Assembly: GCA_048013815.1 (NCBI GenBank)
Contig: CM106585.1
Location: forward strand, 12,462,001 to 12,526,000
Reading direction: 5' to 3'
From: Setoptus koraiensis
Lineage: Eukaryota > Animalia > Arthropoda
Length of the DNA stretch: 64,000 nt
Both the position numbers and the translations under genes were made by a program. The notes below the pieces were generated by a model. That model saw only the letters and a list, made by a program, of their open reading frames with translations, ran no database searches and had not been told where the DNA came from. This document shows, piece after piece, positions 48,675-57,085 of the stretch. Each line of letters starts with the position of its first letter. Position 1 is the first letter of the stretch.

Positions 48675-50502
48675 GTGTCGGTGGCGCTGTGGGTGCCAGT
48701 GAGTGGCAGCGGTGCGTGCTACGTGATACTGTCATGATAAAAATTGCAATTCTCGCTGCTCTGGCTTCTCGTGCTTGCTGCGCCGCTCTCTCCTCGGAGT
48801 TGCCGGCGCCATCATTATTGCGTAATAGATCGAGCATATAGCACCAATTACATATTAGAGAACAAGTGGCACAATTGAGACAGATGGGGCCAAGACAGGC
48901 GAGCGCGTGTTCGCACGTGCTCCTGTCTTGCCACGTTGGAGACCCCATTCGAATACAGTGCACGGTCTACAGCCGAATGTATTGAGTGTTTGTTGCAAAA
49001 ATACAACCCCGGGCGCCCCAATACTGCTTGCCTGTGTCCAACTATCTCGAGGCCATTTCGATCTGTCCCTGCATTATAATTATACAATATCAATTCGAAG
49101 AAAGCCAACCAACAGCCGCAGCTAGCCACCCAATAGAGAGATAGAGAATGGGCAGGAATAAATTATAAACTGCATCGCTGTATCCAATCTATGCCTTTGT
49201 GAGCCAACCAGTTTGGGCTTGCCAAGTCGGGCCTAAATGAAATTACATAATCAAACTCTCTCGCGTGGGCGCCTACGTAATGCACACGACACATGTAAAT
49301 CGAAAGTAGTTTGCAATGATACATGCCGGATTTCGCCGGGTGGTGATATTCTCCGTTACAAAGTAGAATTGGCACTTGCATGTATGCACCAAGTACGAGC
49401 ACCAATGTTGGATATACTGTATATATCATATACACATCAAATGGTGTTCGATTAGATGGATGCGAAAAACAATAAATAACCGCGATTGCAACGATAAAAG
49501 CGAACTCAATTCAGCGTCGCATTCAGCTTAAATTGATAGCCACCGACTGACTGTAATGGCCAGAATGTGTCAATTCTGGCTCTAAATTCGTTACGAGCTC
49601 GCTCGCATGGGAAAAGCCTCGGAAATTTCCCTGATAGATTAAGGCACCCTATCCAGACCCAACATCTGAACCCGAATCATTTCATGTACAATAACTGGCG
49701 CCTCGTACTGAGCGAGTCGTATCCGCTCATGCTTGATGCCTAGTTAAGTTGTCTTTTTGGGCACCTCACGAACCTTGAATCAGGATGCGTCCAACCTGGA
49801 CGTGTTGCCAATGCGCCATCGTCGTGTCGCAAAAAATGAGACTTTCTAGAGCCCCCCCCCCCTTGACCTTGGTGTGTTAGCATTAGTTTGACGGCAGATA
49901 GGCCAGCATGCTGGCGGCCCATTTTGGCTAAGATAATCATCTAAATCGATGCAACCCTATGCTCGATGTCGACACTGTCGCTCATTTATTCTCGCGTGCA
50001 ACATCCACTCAGAGGGGCGCCTATCAGCATCTCAGGGGCCTTGTAGATGACGAACTGGCGAAATCTGAAATGAAACCACTTCCCAACTTGAGGGCCTCAA
50101 GTCTTCTCAGCGGCCGATGTCGGGACTGAAAAACAAAGAGCTCAGGGGCATAATTGAAATCATTGAATGTGCCTTCAGAATCTGATGATCAGATAAAATT
50201 CAGACGATTATTATTGAAATAGCCGAATGCCATAAGATTGCAGATAACTGTCACCGTGTTACCGTTATACAAGATATTGCATGAGATTAAGAGAGTATTA
50301 AGAGAAAAGAACAAGGCGAGGCTAGTGAAACATCCTGTTTATTAGTGACCCAATAATGACAAACAACGATCAATTGTCAATGGAGGCAATTGTGGTAGAA
50401 AAAATATAGTCGTCTATCGATAATATATGTACAACAATAATAGTAAGCTGCTCACACAAGAAATCGACCGATTTCAATGACAACACAGTTTTCCAGCATC
50501 CA

Positions 50503-53022
50503 TCAATAATTGATTGCTGCATTTGTTGTGGCGCTCTGGCCCAAAAAGGGGCCCCTGGGCGATTTTTGGCCGCTGTCCAGCGCTGTTTGCGCTTGTCCGT
50601 GTTCGCTAATGATAAAATTCTCGTCGAAGTTACTTTGTCTTAAATTGCATAATCTTGCAGCAGCAGCGCCCTTCTTGATTGGATTACATTGATTAGTTTT
50701 GGACAATTTGCCATTGCGTCCATTGTGTGCAGACGACGATGCCTGCTGATAAACGTCCGCTGAGGGCGACTCATGATTGTGACCGTTAACGGTCCCATTC
50801 ACCAGCCGCCCGTTGGCCATCTCTTCCACATGATAACTGTTACTCTTAGAATTGTCACAATTGTCTCGGTGACTTGGCGAGCTCAGCGGACTCAGTTCAA
50901 TATCTGTGCGCGTTGCAGTATCGCTGGCACTGTCCAATGACGACATTGAACTGGCCGGTCTCAGGTGACTGCGACCGTTCATTTTTTTGCCGTTAGCTTG
51001 TTGTTGCTTGCAACGTTTGTTTGCATTCTTTTTTGCTTTACCCTCCATATTTGTATTGGCAGCATGCGGTGTTGCATCATTCGCAATCATTGTTTTGACG
51101 CTGTGACAATTGTTGGCTTGACCATTCAATGTGGGCAATTGTGTGGCGCGCAACGGCGATCTTATATGATTAGTGCGCTGTTGTTGTTGTTGTTGTTCGA
51201 GTTCTAGTTGTAGCTGTTGGCCATTGTGGCCCGTTGAGACACGTTTGTTGTCGCTGGACATGTAGCGAGAGTTGTTGCCGTTGCTGTTGTTGTCGTTGTT
51301 ATCGTCTTCATCGACGTCGATGTCGGTGTGGAAGGAACGCCGCAGATAGTGCGATTTATCTCTATTCTTGGACGAGCTAAATTCGAGATATTCGTAGGTG
51401 AACGCGCCAAACAGACCCGCAATGAACGGCGTCACCAGGTAAACAAACTGACGATTGTTGTATATGGACCAATGGCCGGCACAGGTCGGTTGTTGCAACG
51501 ATTCGAGCAGTTGCAACCATTCGAGCAGTTGAATGGATTAGAAGATGACAAAGATTAATTGTGTGATTGCAGCAGATACCGGCCGCCACTGATTGATATT
51601 GTCGATTTGATGAGACTCAAAAATCAAAAGTTACCCTCAAAGGTGAGAGTGGCTTACCCATTGATTGTTCCAGCGTTGTGCAAACAGAGCTAGCGACATG
51701 AGCTGAAATGGATGCGCATACAATCCGCCCGACAGGCTCTAATGGCGACAATGATCGGGTGACAGTTTTGACGCAATGCGATTAGATTTGATTTGATACG
51801 AGCCGAATAATGGAATTTGCGGACAAGAAGACGAAGAATAGGAAAACAAACAATGAGTTAACGTAGACACAAAAGCTGCTCGCCAGTGTGACAGTTGGCG
51901 CTTCTTCTAATTGCGTAGCACGACAACCGGCCAGACAATCGGCTCTCAAATAATGAGAGTGTCACATAATCATACCAGACTTACGGACTATAAACACTCG
52001 ATAAACACTGGCGCTGGCTGGCAGCAGCTGCCAATCATTTAATATAAATCTAATATCGCCAGCAGTGTTTCCATTATCAACTGTGGACGAGTGCACTTAC
52101 CGTGAACGCGTAGCCAACGAAATAGGCCAAGCCGATGGAGAGCGATTTAAAGCCCAGGTCTTGGCGGGCCGGCTCAACATTTGCCAAATATGTCAGCACT
52201 ATCAGCAGTGTTGCTATAAATTGAAAACCAAACAATTGGCTGCTGTTAAACAGATCAGCGTTTGTAGTATCTATGTCGGCAGTGTGAGGCGCTTTGTTGG
52301 CCTCTCTTCTGTCGTTGTTGTTCCAAATTTTACTAATGTTTTGATTCGGCGAATTGGGCATATTCAACGCACGGCCATTGTTGTTGCTGTTGCTGTCCGA
52401 CGACAAGCCGCTCGCATTTGATACACGGTGCACAACGGCGCTCATTTTCTTTCCGTCGTGATGCAACTTGAACGCTGTGACCGGTAGAGCATAATCAATC
52501 ATTGATATAATTACATCCCTTCTGCCAGACTCAAACAAACCACTAGCGCTAGTGGCGCCCAAGGCTAACGGTGTTGCCATTGTCGATGTCGATGTCGGTG
52601 GCATCTCAAACAAATTTGATGGTAATTGCGCGCCAGCCATTTGGCCCCTTTCCAGGTGAGCGTTGCGCCCCTCTCCTATATAGCGGCGCTTTCGGCGTCG
52701 GCGTCTCTCCCCGTCGGCCGACTCGTCGGTCAAACCGCTTGAGCTGGGGCCCACCTTTTCAGGCCTCTCGTATTGCGTTACATTCAGGCTGGCTGCTTGG
52801 TTGCGGCCCCTGCTATCACCGCTAACACTGCCGATACTATTAATATCACTACTATCATTAGTAACATGAGAATACTTGGCAACGTCGCGCAGCCTATCTG
52901 CTCTATCTGTTTTATCTATACCACTGACTCCAACCGCCAATTGTGCGGCCGAAGAAGTTGCCGTTCCCGCAAGAGCATAGGGGCGCATTATTTTCGCCGC
53001 GCCCCTATGCTTTGAGCCGACG

Positions 53023-53063
<41 letters not shown>

Positions 53064-54914
53064 AATGTTGTTGTTGCCGGCGTTGGTGCTCGGGCCGCTG
53101 GCCACCATCTCACCTGTGCCAACCTCGCTGCTTGTGTACGGACTCCAGGCTGACCACTGTCCATATTGAGTTGTTGCTGGCTGCTGTTGTTGCTGTTGTT
53201 GCATTAGATGGGGGCCAGAGGGGCCACTGGTAATCTTGTTAGCTTCGTCCTGTTGTTGGCGTCGCTTTTTCTTCCTATTGTGCAGTTCATCCAATATTGA
53301 TAGCAGAATTAATTCGCTACCATCACCTAATAATTTATTGCCAGTCGCCAGTTCATTGGCACTGGTGGTTGTAATTGGTGGCGCCACTGTTGTCGCAGAG
53401 CTCGTTGTTGTTGTTGTTGTTGTTGCTGCTGCTGTTGCTGTTGTCGTTGTTGCTGTCGGAATTGTTATTGTCGCTTGGACGGCCGGTTCGCGCTGTTGTT
53501 GTAGTTGTTGCTGTTTGTTTGTGTCGCGCACAATAAGCAACTCATTAGTGTATTCTGTCACTGGCAACGACTCGTTGGCTTCCTCAGATCGTTTAGCTCT
53601 CAGAAATCTTATCTGATGGCTAAAGTCATGATTAAATTTGTCTTGCATAGAGGCTTGCATACCAGCGACCGTCGTAACATTGTTAGCGCCGTCCCCTAGC
53701 AGCATTTGCATTTCTCTCAAGGGAAATTCAGGTGAGTCGCCGCTGCTTGCTGTAAGATAGCTAACTGGTATTGATAAGTCGCCTCTATTCACACTAACAC
53801 CTAAGCCTGTATATGGGGCTCCTAACTGCACTTGCTGTTGCTGCTGAGTAACGGGCATTTCTACTATGGATGCCGATAAACTCCACAATAGGGTCACCGC
53901 GATAATTGAGCCAAAGAATTGTGCAACGAGATAACAAGTGAAACGAGTTGAAGTAATATGCCGCCTAACTAACAATGCCAAGCTAATTGATGGGACTATA
54001 TGACAGCCGCTAATATTTCCAAATATTTGCGTCAGAGAGGCCACTGTAAACGCTTGAAACAAACCATTTAGTAAGGCCACTAGTAACAGCGACAATGACA
54101 ACTTGTCGCCGGTACCCTGATTATCTGTGTCGCTGTTAGATGGCCGATTGAGACCGTGATTGCCAGAATTGATAGTGTCACCAGAATCGAGGTGATGCAA
54201 CAATGGCGAACTTGCATAGTGGCTCTTGTTGTAATAGTTTGTAGTTATCAACAATTGCGTTGTTAATGTAACAAATAGCAATGATGTCAGAAATTCTGTA
54301 CGGACACATTTCCAGAATTGATACGATCTCAGTTCATCGCTGGCACTCACATCATTGGGCACAGATATGAGATATTTGTATAAGGAATTGAATTTGGTGT
54401 ACAAAAATAAATTCGACGATGTTCGCTGATGGTGCCGCTGCTGATTATGATAATTAGGCTGATTGATTTGCTGTCTATGATGATGGTGGTGGTCGGGTTG
54501 AGAACCGTATTGCGCACCATAGCTATCTGTTTGGCTATTTTTGGACATCGCTGGACACTCAATTAGCATGGATTCGGATACAGAAAGAATGTGAGGCTGT
54601 TGTTTTGGCTGGGGCGAATTATGACGATACTGGCGATAGTGTTGCTGCTTATCTGATGCCGCTGATGAGGATGCCGTTGCTGTTGTTGTTGTTGCATGGT
54701 TTAGTTGACGCCTCTCGTGCGATAAAGACGATGGTAACTTTGAATCATGAGAACTATTTCGCTGCGATATCGACGCCAAACCGGACTTTTTCGATATTGT
54801 TTTCTTCATTGGCGACTTGTCATACGTAACTTCAAGGGCCTCCACAGATAGTTGCGTAAGAGGCGACTCATCGGGAGAATTGTTTGCACTAGCACTAGTT
54901 TTATTGGGTGGCAT
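50503..54914 (-). CDS. bib: Big brain-like aquaporin (MIP family) with degenerate NPA boxes; join(54914..52101, 51738..51658, 51447..50503), ~1,279 aa
   Basis: ELRSYQFWKCVRTEFL (TM1), ASLTQIFGNISGCHI, IVLTYLANVEP, SIGLAY, RWNNQWFVYLVTP and TYEYL align with the Bib subfamily pattern as I recall it (EIRTLEFW, ATLTQCFLHISGAHI, SIGCAY, KWDSHWVYW, VYEYI). An 81-nt internal exon not in the ORF track supplies loop E. Both introns are phase 0, GT-AG. Confidence 0.8.
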
Positions 54915-55477
54915 CTTGCTGAAAATTATCACTACTATATTACCTATCCAGTGAAAACTTTGTCGACCTCTCTTTATGACACATAAACTAGACTACTGCA
55001 AACATCGGATTTACTCTTACTCTCGCCGCGTCTCAAATCACTGAATTGATCAAGTCGATGATCTCTCTCAAAGGTGGTCATTCTCTAAAATGCCCAACAG
55101 GCCATATAATCTATTATGTAATTGTGTTCACTACATCCAATCACATAGATCAGTATGTCAAAAGATGTCTGATGTCTGATCATTGGATGTTGCAAAGACT
55201 AACTAAACAAACCGAAATGAAAAAAGTTTCACTCTCCCACTTTCAATAGAGAGATTCGAACAAACAGTTGGTTCCTTCTTTATCTTATGGCCACCAGTAC
55301 GGACTATATGAAGAATAATACCCCGTAGATCTTATCGAAAGAAAGATAGAGACAGCACAAGCTTTGTGCGCAAGTCCAACAAAAGAATCTAGCCAAAACA
55401 CACGACATCTAGTGAACAAGGTAACAAACGTTATACATAGAAACGCTTCAAAGTTTTTATAGCTGCATAATGAAAAG

Positions 55478-57085
55478 CTACATAATATTTTGTTGCTGTA
55501 GTTGTTGTGGATGTTGCTGCTGTTGTGGCTGTTGTTGTTGTTGCTGCTGCGACTGAGGCTGTTGCTGTTGCTGCTGCGGCTGTTGTTGCTGCTGCTCCTG
55601 CTGTTGCTGTGAATTGTTGCTAGAATCCAAACTGCTGCTACTGTTAGCTGGCATCATTTGATTACTCATTTGTTGAATAGAGTTTGCAGTATTTTTAACA
55701 TGCAATCCGCTCTTGATTACGGCTGCTCTCAAAATTAGAGCCCGCGCTCTAGTTTGCCAATCTTTGCCCATTTTGATCGCATGCTCAAATGTCACAGTCC
55801 GTTGATCAACATCTTTGGCAAACAATATCTTATTATGCGAATCTATACGGGCTTGTATTTGACCCTCTAGTATGAGATGCATTACTTCCTGCTCTAGATC
55901 ATTGATATTAGTGTTGAAAGCTGTGGCCATTGTGAACATCGCAGCAGATGAATATGGTGAAAAGTATTGTATTAGTGCTCGATTCCTTATCATTGTGTAC
56001 AAACGGTCAATGTGAGGAGCTAAATATATATCTAACACTAAAACGTCTTTGATTTCGGCTAAAATAGATAGGCACGATGCGTAGTTGGAGTCATAAAATT
56101 TGCATACAGCATCGCGTAGTTGTGGATCTAGCTCGAAGAATAACTTGAAAGAGGAGGAATTGATGACACTTTTGTACAATTCGGAACGATCAAATGTGGC
56201 CAAAGCGCACAGGCTTCCATAAACTGCAATGTTATTTGGACACAATATATCCCAACATGTGCCCTTGTCAGGGCTATTACTGGTACCTTGATGGAAGTGT
56301 TCAAAGTTGGTATTTAAGAAATGTTTGGCCGCCTTTTTAAATTTTCTCGCTGTTAGCTCAAACAATCCTGCAGCACAATGTAATTTTGTTGATATTGTTG
56401 GATTGATGGAATTATCACCTTGAACTTGAGTCTCTGCTTTAGCGACGTAACTAGAGACATTGTTCCAGTTTTGTGTAAATATACTAATACGTATCATATT
56501 GAGACATTGGTTAACATTATTCTTAGGTGAGGTACAATAATCACGAGATCTAGAATAACATTTAAGAGCGTTTTGTAGATCGCCACAATCAAGATAATGA
56601 TCGCCAAGGTCATCATGGCCACGTCTGATAGATTCCTTGATAGAGTTGCTCTTATAATTTTTCAGATCATTGTCTAGCTTGTCTAACTTGGTGGCCACTT
56701 GTTTCATTTTGGTGTCTATCCATGCCTGGTCTGGTTGAGGTATGGCTACAACAGCCTGACCAGGCGTTTCATTATTTTCGGCGATGGCCTCCTGTAATCT
56801 CTTGAATAATCTATTGTAAGCTTGAACATTGAATGTGTTCTCTTTTATATAATTAATAGCCAACGTCAATGCGTCCACTCTCAGTTGCCTGCAATGATTG
56901 GCGATGAATTCTAGACGTGATATCTTGGCTAGGCCCTGATAATTTGCCGCGTAGCTCTCTAAATCAATATTGGCATTGTCAATAACGTAGACGTTTTGAT
57001 TTGGTTGTTCTTCGTTGTCCTCGTGATCGACATCGAGCTCCATGGGCTCATAATTGTTGGCCGCGACCTGTACCGGCAAAGGCAT
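55478..57085 (-). CDS. GPS1: COP9 signalosome subunit 1 (CSN1/GPS1), 535 aa, intronless CDS, Gln-rich tail
   Basis: NYKSNSIKESIRRGHDDLGDHYLDCGDLQNALKCYSRSRDYCT, YGSLCALATFDR and PCI-domain QIQARIDSHNKIL are characteristic of CSN1. Confidence 0.97.
   Translation of the reverse strand: MPLPVQVAANNYEPMELDVDHEDNEEQPNQNVYVIDNANIDLESYAANYQGLAKISRLEFIANHCRQLRVDALTLAINYIKENTFNVQAYNRLFKRLQEAIAENNETPGQAVVAIPQPDQAWIDTKMKQVATKLDKLDNDLKNYKSNSIKESIRRGHDDLGDHYLDCGDLQNALKCYSRSRDYCTSPKNNVNQCLNMIRISIFTQNWNNVSSYVAKAETQVQGDNSINPTISTKLHCAAGLFELTARKFKKAAKHFLNTNFEHFHQGTSNSPDKGTCWDILCPNNIAVYGSLCALATFDRSELYKSVINSSSFKLFFELDPQLRDAVCKFYDSNYASCLSILAEIKDVLVLDIYLAPHIDRLYTMIRNRALIQYFSPYSSAAMFTMATAFNTNINDLEQEVMHLILEGQIQARIDSHNKILFAKDVDQRTVTFEHAIKMGKDWQTRARALILRAAVIKSGLHVKNTANSIQQMSNQMMPANSSSSLDSSNNSQQQQEQQQQQPQQQQQQPQSQQQQQQQPQQQQHPQQLQQQNIM

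Follow-up and report, generated by a model that had tools for sequence, protein, structure and literature searches.

Altered pore residues in a Setoptus koraiensis aquaporin-fold protein and in an unnamed clade of its relatives

Aquaporins are a textbook fold defined by its pore chemistry: the two Asn residues of the NPA boxes and the Arg of the aromatic/arginine (ar/R) constriction form the water-coordinating and the cation- and proton-excluding filters (PMC4150397, PMC5513457). Big brain (Bib) has no appreciable water permeability, and roles in adhesion, signalling or cation conductance have been proposed for it (PMC4539701, PMC5513457, PMC5713292). AQP11/12 and the arthropod Aqp12-like proteins deviate in the first NPA box (CPY or NPC), in some cases have no Arg, and transport water doubtfully or not at all (PMC5513457), and in Trypanosoma brucei AQP2 (TbAQP2) both boxes are non-canonical (NSA/NPS), the ar/R Arg is replaced by Leu and function is altered (PMC4150397, PMC8355241). 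Here we describe a gene on the minus strand of a 64,000-nucleotide stretch of the Setoptus koraiensis genome (assembly GCA_048013815.1, contig CM106585.1, positions 12,462,001 to 12,526,000; hereafter the window). The gene is intact, has three exons and encodes a protein of about 1,278 amino acids with the MIP (aquaporin) fold. By sequence comparison it belongs to a clade in which classical pore residues have been replaced. A conserved, selected clade of aquaporins without the Asn pair, the filter Arg and a buried Glu would show, as an experiment of nature, to what use the MIP fold is put once it no longer serves as a selective water pore, and it bears on the long-standing question whether Bib-type 'non-water' aquaporins are channels or scaffolds.

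With AQP1 and AQP4 the window protein shares the Glu of the first transmembrane segment (TM1), ISG.H in loop B, D.RR.DLG in loop D, L.IGL in TM5 and ..GG..A...Y[DE][YF]I in TM6. Relative to human AQP1, Asn76 is replaced by Val, Glu142 by Gln, Asn192 by His and Arg195 by Gln, the ar/R residues Phe56, His180 and Cys189 correspond to Gln, Tyr and Leu, and compared with AQP1 and AQP4 loop C is longer by about 525 residues and the termini by about 480. Mite and spider aquaporins share with it the pre-TM1 sequence ..Y[IL].S[LV]P.., FWK..RTEF in TM1 and ..GFKSLSIG.. in TM5, and several of them likewise have a degenerate first NPA box (HLSIA in Dermatophagoides farinae, HVTPT in Halotydeus); they differ in that the TM4 Glu is present, ar/R position 2 is mostly His, loop E carries NPA together with Arg or Lys, and loop C is short (18–62 amino acids), with some having insertions in loop D instead. 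Bib and Bib-like (BibL) proteins resemble the window protein in that a classical MIP core is flanked by long cytoplasmic regions at both ends, but described Bibs keep the NPA motifs and the Arg and have no large loop C. The Bib tail contains a conserved Tyr-containing motif (PMC5513457), whereas the window tail carries a distinct conserved motif, D.NF[LI]IS. AQP11/12 belong to another MIP branch, while the closest relatives of the window protein are of the classical AQP1/4 type, and the Aqp12-like proteins keep the second-box Asn-Pro and are of ordinary size. TbAQP2 is an aquaglyceroporin that keeps both Asn, lacks loop and tail expansions, and represents a recent change in a single lineage as opposed to an old clade.

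Pore residues and gene structure of the window protein

The Pfam MIP family (PF00230) matched the protein with 78.6 bits against a cut-off of 25 (E=7.6e-22 for exon A), in two stretches on either side of loop C. In loop B, the codons GTC CCA TCA encode VPS at 53996-53988, within ...ISGCHIVPSISLAL..., where aquaporins have NPA; the corresponding half-helix, GNISGCHIVPSISLALLV, spans 53967..54020. In loop E, the codons CAT CCA TTT encode HPF at 51714-51706, within SGGLYAHPFQ, again in place of NPA, and Gln at 51703-51705 stands in place of the ar/R selectivity Arg. Both boxes keep the Pro and have lost the Asn. In the buried Glu pair, the TM1 Glu (residue 206, 54294-54296; TM1 at 54246..54323) is present, and the TM4 Glu is replaced by Gln (residue 897, 52221-52223; TM4 at 52179..52241).

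The residue register was obtained by phmmer against solved structures for the window protein, and for the C-terminal half through the intron-less homologue P0006. AQP1 and AQP4 were the top matches among solved structures (e.g. 1fqy, 8v91), and the loop B Val aligned with human AQP1 Asn76 and the Glu of RTEF with Glu17. In the alignment of P0006 with AQP1, the TM4 Gln corresponds to Glu142, the loop E Asn to Asn192 and the following residue to Arg195. Across the window intron, 22 residues separate the LSIGL motif of TM5 from the xP of loop E, as they do in AQP1 and in intron-less homologues including P0006. Because of the P0006 register and this constant spacing, the window His is assigned to the Asn192 site and the Gln to the Arg195 site, giving an ar/R quartet of Gln/Tyr/Leu/Gln. 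Hydropathy detected TM2, TM3 and TM4; the positions given for TM1, TM5, TM6 and the loop E half-helix come from alignment. An AlphaFold2 model of P0006, built on an 18-row alignment, contained six transmembrane segments and two half-helices in its secondary structure at a mean predicted local distance difference test score (pLDDT) of 44.

The gene, all of whose features lie on the minus strand (-), begins with exon A (52101..54911), an open reading frame of 937 codons that runs from the ATG (MPPNK...) to the donor ACG|GTAAGT and covers the N-terminal cytoplasmic region, TM1-3, loop C and TM4-5. Exon B (51658..51738; 81 nt, 27 codons) encodes the loop E half-helix, is stop-free and is flanked by an AG acceptor and a GTAAGC donor. 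Exon C (50503..51447) comprises 314 codons (51447-50506) and the TGA stop codon at 50505-50503, and encodes TM6 (51379-51447), the post-TM6 motif and a tail of about 290 amino acids with the motif SNFDENFIIS. Intron 1 (51739..52100, 362 nt) and intron 2 (51448..51657, 210 nt) have GT...AG ends, and each would introduce in-frame stops if retained. A small loop E exon occurs at the equivalent place in the relatives on contigs L001, L003, L005 and L008; this conservation and the residue spacing are what support the predicted splice model. Apparent read joints over the locus turned out to be artefacts of CAA/CAG-type repeats in DNA contigs and were discarded as splice evidence.

Contigs from three public DNA runs cover 50300-55000 with three single-base differences and no insertions or deletions. 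None of the differences falls on the pore-box codons or the splice sites: 51166 A>T (run X3) makes residue 94 of the tail exon a Gln instead of a His, and those at 50782 and 54549 are synonymous. We conclude that the window contains a real, intact, three-exon gene for an aquaporin-fold protein. The first-pass annotation of the window, made from the DNA letters and their open reading frames, had read VPS in loop B, HPF in an 81-nt loop E exon at 51738-51658 and Gln in TM4, and all three readings hold. The minus-strand translation and the three DNA assemblies agree on VPS, the loop E exon is open, correctly bordered and shared with relatives, and the Gln aligns with Glu142 through P0006. That annotation had also allowed for an alternative exon supplying an NPA box; a six-frame scan of the whole 64-kb window found none with an NPA-type loop near the gene.

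Residue changes across an unnamed clade

A word-index search with the window sequence returned a single homologue, P0001, whose contig contains the small loop E exon (with NPF-Q in loop E) and the last exon at equivalent positions; a second word-index search with the same sequence returned no homologue. With the 18-row family alignment as query, the word-index search returned unnamed family members only and no named Bib. An exhaustive HMMER search with a two-sequence profile of TM1-3 yielded 18 proteins at E<1e-30 (508-1294 amino acids), followed by a drop to ordinary MIPs. In total, about 25 relatives of 380-1294 amino acids were collected. The clusters looked up for these relatives all derived from Logan, ENA or JGI assemblies (raw or metagenome) and none was named, and a feature search of the ESM Atlas gave only generic 'Aquaporin-1 family' clusters. 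For none of the approximately 25 genes was an NCBI or UniProt name found, and a literature search of incomplete coverage found no description of such a clade. Roughly 25 such genes thus sit unnamed in raw assemblies, and for mite biology they add an unannotated, lineage-restricted family of surface proteins.

In a maximum-likelihood tree of 69 rows and 207 columns, the window protein and 25 relatives (P0001-P0021, P0164-P0167) formed a clade of 26 members with a support of 100/99, the window protein being sister to the 25 others. This clade nests in a 47-row mite group (99/92) beside two other groups, of which one holds D. farinae XP_046918068.1 / KAH9528706.1 (named 'lens fiber MIP-like' / hypothetical) and the other Halotydeus destructor KAI1287792.1 (named 'Aquaporin-1'); a spider 'aquaporin-4' (Trichonephila GFR22638.1) lies just outside the 47-row group. 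The phylogeny thus places mite and spider aquaporins as the nearest named relatives of the clade. The clade-defining set is completely present in the window protein: Gln in TM4, a non-Asn first box, ..GFKSLSIG.. in TM5, an enlarged loop C, the loop C islands ..SE.ILLSI.. and ..LL.[FY]ALP.., and the tail motif D.NF[LI]IS. Judged by its sequence, the window gene is not a copy in decay or an isolated case but a member of a conserved, unnamed clade.

Among the MIP sequences compared, the first-box Asn is present in none of the 26 clade members, in 12 of 25 other arachnid proteins and in all 23 of the rest. The clade instead has Ile (10), Leu (7), Ala (3), Val (2), Ser (2) or Thr (2) at this position. 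The TM4 position is Gln in 26/26 clade members versus Glu in 45/46 others. Loop E was readable in just 11 clade members: seven have NP[A/M/V/F], three that branch early have SP[A/Q], and HPF belongs to the window protein alone, so that His at the loop E Asn site was found in this genome only. The residues at the Arg position in the clade are Q, H, H, H, Q, H, F, H, H and L. Loop C measures 50-575 amino acids in the clade versus 18-62 in MIPs outside it, and loop D is fixed at a length of 10 in the clade. The clade substitutions are fixed across about 25 relatives at 25-49% identity. This distribution shows that the first-box Asn, the TM4 Glu and the filter Arg were lost before the clade diversified, and that the window protein has additionally exchanged its second-box Asn for His.

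The first-pass claim that the selectivity Arg is lost thereby extends from the window protein to the whole clade. The claim that both NPA boxes are lost applies to the window protein as far as both Asn are concerned, but not to the family, since 7 of the 11 readable members keep Asn-Pro in loop E. Likewise, the TM1 Glu, to which the same annotation had attached importance as a residue needed for the cation conductance of Drosophila Bib, is indeed present; however, as it occurs in 74 of 74 MIP sequences compared, its retention is uninformative. Outside the clade, D. farinae KAH9528706.1 (P0174) reads HLSIA and Halotydeus KAI1287792.1 (P0042) reads HVTPT at the first box; in both, the TM4 Glu is present and loop E has NPA together with Lys or Arg. 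The degenerate first box in these mite aquaporins indicates that erosion of the first NPA predates the clade.

Selection, extramembrane regions and competing explanations

Selection was estimated from the ratio of nonsynonymous to synonymous substitution rates (dN/dS) between contigs L008 and L010, which carry the family members P0010 and P0012 (one sequencing run, 55% amino-acid identity). This pair replaced L005 and L009, which are 99% identical with 9 differences and gave no power. The dN/dS value was 0.046 for the membrane core, 0.46 for loop C and 0.35 for the N-terminus. For the core, the proportion of nonsynonymous differences (pN 0.08) compared to that of synonymous differences (pS 0.68) is unambiguous, although synonymous sites are near saturation and the values are rough. 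Column entropy was calculated over 126 membrane columns, with positions set by motif anchors and two ar/R positions scored. The mean membrane-column entropy was 0.94 bits in the clade versus 1.81 bits in other MIPs. Among the 126 columns, ar/R position 1 was the most variable in the clade (3.37 bits), ar/R position 2 ranked 4th and the NPA1 Asn column 11th; the same three columns ranked 49th, 98th and 105th in other MIPs. The membrane core of the clade is thus under tighter constraint than usual, whereas the pore-defining residues have been freed from it.

Conserved elements were also identified outside the pore. The pre-TM1 cytoplasmic motif KFNSLYKYLISVPND (54351..54395) aligns with MRRYIESLP.. 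of other arachnid MIPs and RMKEYFESF of the clade, and the corresponding region of the P0006 model is helical with a pLDDT of about 70. Loop D, VEPARQDLGFKS, together with TM5, LSIGLAYFVGYAFT (52101..52178), is the best-conserved stretch of the family, with 69% identity to P0001 over 51 amino acids. The post-TM6 motif ..YLRRSF.. (51316-51354) has the clade form ..LRRSF.., and SNFDENFIIS (50605-50634) corresponds to the clade motif D.NF[LI]IS; a cytoplasmic tail with this conserved motif is found in every clade member readable to its end. Loop C (52242..53873) comprises about 545 residues (548 in the loop-length count), is of low complexity, as is much of the protein, contains six N-x-S/T sequons and is predicted to be extracellular by MIP topology. 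Its first island, GSELILLSILDE... (53250..53321), was recovered as a BLASTP match to P0001 and is followed by the polybasic run RKKKRR; the family consensus of the island is ..GSETILLSIMEQ.., and the island is helical with a pLDDT of 78 in the P0006 model. The second island, ..VIISMIDYALPV.. (52470..52523), is the counterpart of the family sequence YINLLEFALPD. The loop C consensus of the family, consisting of the first island, a polybasic run and ..YINLLEFALPD.IMSS.SIRQC.., is kept completely in the window protein. Its polybasic runs, RRRRRKRR at 52683-52706 and RKKKRR at 53250-53270, resemble runs in the family consensus and are possible convertase sites. Pfam matches of loop C to New_glue, EED insertion and TMEM51 were below the cut-offs and compositional and were rejected.

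The most economical reading of the clade-wide loss of filter residues and of the drift in their columns is that the monomer pore is not the selected function. With a probability of roughly 60%, we propose that the pore is no longer selected as a water conduit and that the membrane core is kept as a platform with a scaffold, adhesion or signalling role. Loss of the Asn and Arg in the whole clade would have been followed by free drift of the filter columns and by abandonment of the monomer pore as a selective water conduit, while the membrane domain may have been retained as a stable, probably tetrameric, platform. Outside the cell, this platform would present loop C with its conserved helical islands, polybasic sites and glycosylation sequons; on the cytoplasmic side it would display the pre-TM1 helix, loop B, loop D, the post-TM6 LRRSF motif and the tail motif. 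Conserved motifs outside the pore on both faces of the membrane therefore point to scaffolding, adhesion or signalling; a scaffold or adhesion role had also been proposed in the first-pass annotation. Its suggestion that the protein is a pseudo-channel, not a water pore, is supported, as all four classical pore determinants are changed, the core is constrained and the filter columns are among the most variable. Several observations weigh against it. The putative filter of the window protein retains some polarity (Gln/Tyr/Leu/Gln, and Val plus His in the centre) and may therefore allow some conductance. The dN/dS values come from a single pair of relatives with synonymous sites near saturation and not from the window's own lineage, the 'other' group of the entropy comparison is heterogeneous and the loop E positions were readable in 11 members only. 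The only three-dimensional model, that of P0006, is of low confidence (mean pLDDT 44) and was used for its secondary structure alone, and a search for an RNA run containing the window locus found none.

The same residue changes might instead signify a channel of new selectivity, in which, both cation filters having gone with the Asn pair and the Arg, the monomer pore passes cations, protons or larger or hydrophobic solutes, or the central pore of the tetramer conducts ions. According to the mutagenesis work of Beitz 2006 and Wu 2009, reviewed in PMC4150397, losing the ar/R Arg and the NPA Asn removes cation and proton exclusion. There are precedents in TbAQP2, which has NSA/NPS boxes and no Arg and takes up a large cationic drug (PMC4150397, PMC8355241), and in Bib, a cation conductor that is not permeable to water (PMC5713292, PMC4539701); for Drosophila Bib and for AQP1, the central pore has been reported to carry ions. 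Strong selection on the membrane core would suit a channel, as would loop D (..DPRR.DLG..), which resembles the Arg-rich loop D of AQP1 and, within the clade, is highly conserved and does not vary in length. However, the residues lining or tuning the monomer pore are the most variable membrane columns, which is unexpected for a conserved conduction path, and in most clade members Leu, Ile or Val has taken the place of Asn at the pore centre. This variability argues against a conserved monomer pathway and is silent on the central pore; overall, we regard a channel of new selectivity as a serious but doubtful alternative. That the gene is a pseudogene or an annotation artefact, i.e. a dead aquaporin copy with decayed motifs, might be concluded from the loss of all signature residues, the low complexity of much of the protein and the fact that no RNA run was found to contain the locus. 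Such decay is very improbable given 1,278 open codons in three exons with canonical splice sites, three assemblies without a frameshift, in which two of three single-base differences are synonymous, the same substitutions fixed in about 25 relatives at 25-49% identity, a core dN/dS of about 0.05 in relatives, and conserved islands persisting in loop C and the tail. The comparisons support pore changes that are old and under selection, not the product of decay.

The label 'Bib-like', which the first-pass annotation had given to the gene, is not supported by the phylogeny. If the gene were a fast-evolving mite orthologue of Big brain or a member of a chelicerate Bib-like group, Bib biology, comprising a Notch-pathway and endosomal role, adhesion and cation conductance, would carry over. 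The long N-terminus and the C-terminal tail of about 290 amino acids do resemble Bib architecture (Bib tails measure about 300 amino acids; PMC5513457, PMC4539701), chelicerates, Tetranychus among them, are reported to have Bib and Bib-like genes (PMC4539701 supplement; PMC5513457), and Bibs are so divergent that identity in the membrane part is 27-38% (PMC4539701). On the other hand, the two NPA motifs and the Arg are intact in the Bibs described (PMC5513457). In the tree, the clade is surrounded by a spider 'aquaporin-4' and by mite proteins with the NCBI names 'lens fiber MIP-like' or 'Aquaporin-1', beside the D. farinae and Halotydeus aquaporins and thus inside the mite and arachnid aquaporin radiation. 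The Limulus 'big brain-like' protein XP_013786741.1 groups with Lingula and vertebrate AQP4-like sequences outside the clade. A tree forcing it together with the clade was 38 log-likelihood units worse (p-AU, the P value of the approximately unbiased test, 0.042), which is a weak test, as this sequence is the sole Bib-named one in the tree and bears an automatic, not a curated, name. Bib-like fragments scored no better with the family profile than AQP1- or AQP4-like proteins. The loop B region of Drosophila Bib, which we take to read ..TLTQCF.HISGAH.., resembles ..SLTQIFGNISGCH.. of the window protein, a similarity that we treat as a lead only. On balance, a Bib identity seems unlikely. Automatic naming at NCBI also affects the Tachypleus counterpart of the Limulus 'big brain-like' protein, which is called 'AQPAe.a-like'.

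A more specific form of the platform reading, which we put forward as a tentative suggestion, is that the clade may have turned from channels into cell-surface receptors or adhesion molecules. Such a protein would combine a dead, unconstrained pore, a tetrameric anchor, a processed loop C that binds ligands or adheres by virtue of its conserved islands and polybasic, convertase-type sites, and coupled docking motifs in the cytoplasm.

Neighbouring genes and other observations

The upstream neighbour of the gene, at 55478-57085 (-) of the window, is a COP9 signalosome subunit 1 (CSN1) gene consisting of a single open reading frame with RPN7, PCI and CSN1_C domains; the reading frame carries a long poly-Gln C-terminal extension. 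In a synteny check, this neighbour was absent from all examined contigs of relatives. On four contigs representing three family members (L003:1-5705, L005:1-3718, L006:1-3331, L009:1-2718), the family gene is preceded by a very long open reading frame on the same strand, of >1,300-2,100 amino acids and without a Pfam match, at the place where the window has CSN1. P0010 (L008:4001-7378) and P0012 (L010:3001-6294), with a dS of about 1.2, each adjoin a Dishevelled-like gene (DIX/PDZ/DEP); the pair could stem from a block duplication, from a sample containing two species, or from haplotypes of great age. The sister mite MIPs P0041, P0053, P0079 and P0069 keep the loop B Asn-Pro (..SCHLNP..) and have cytoplasmic loop D insertions of 95-193 amino acids, and different paralogues in mites seem to have different loops expanded.

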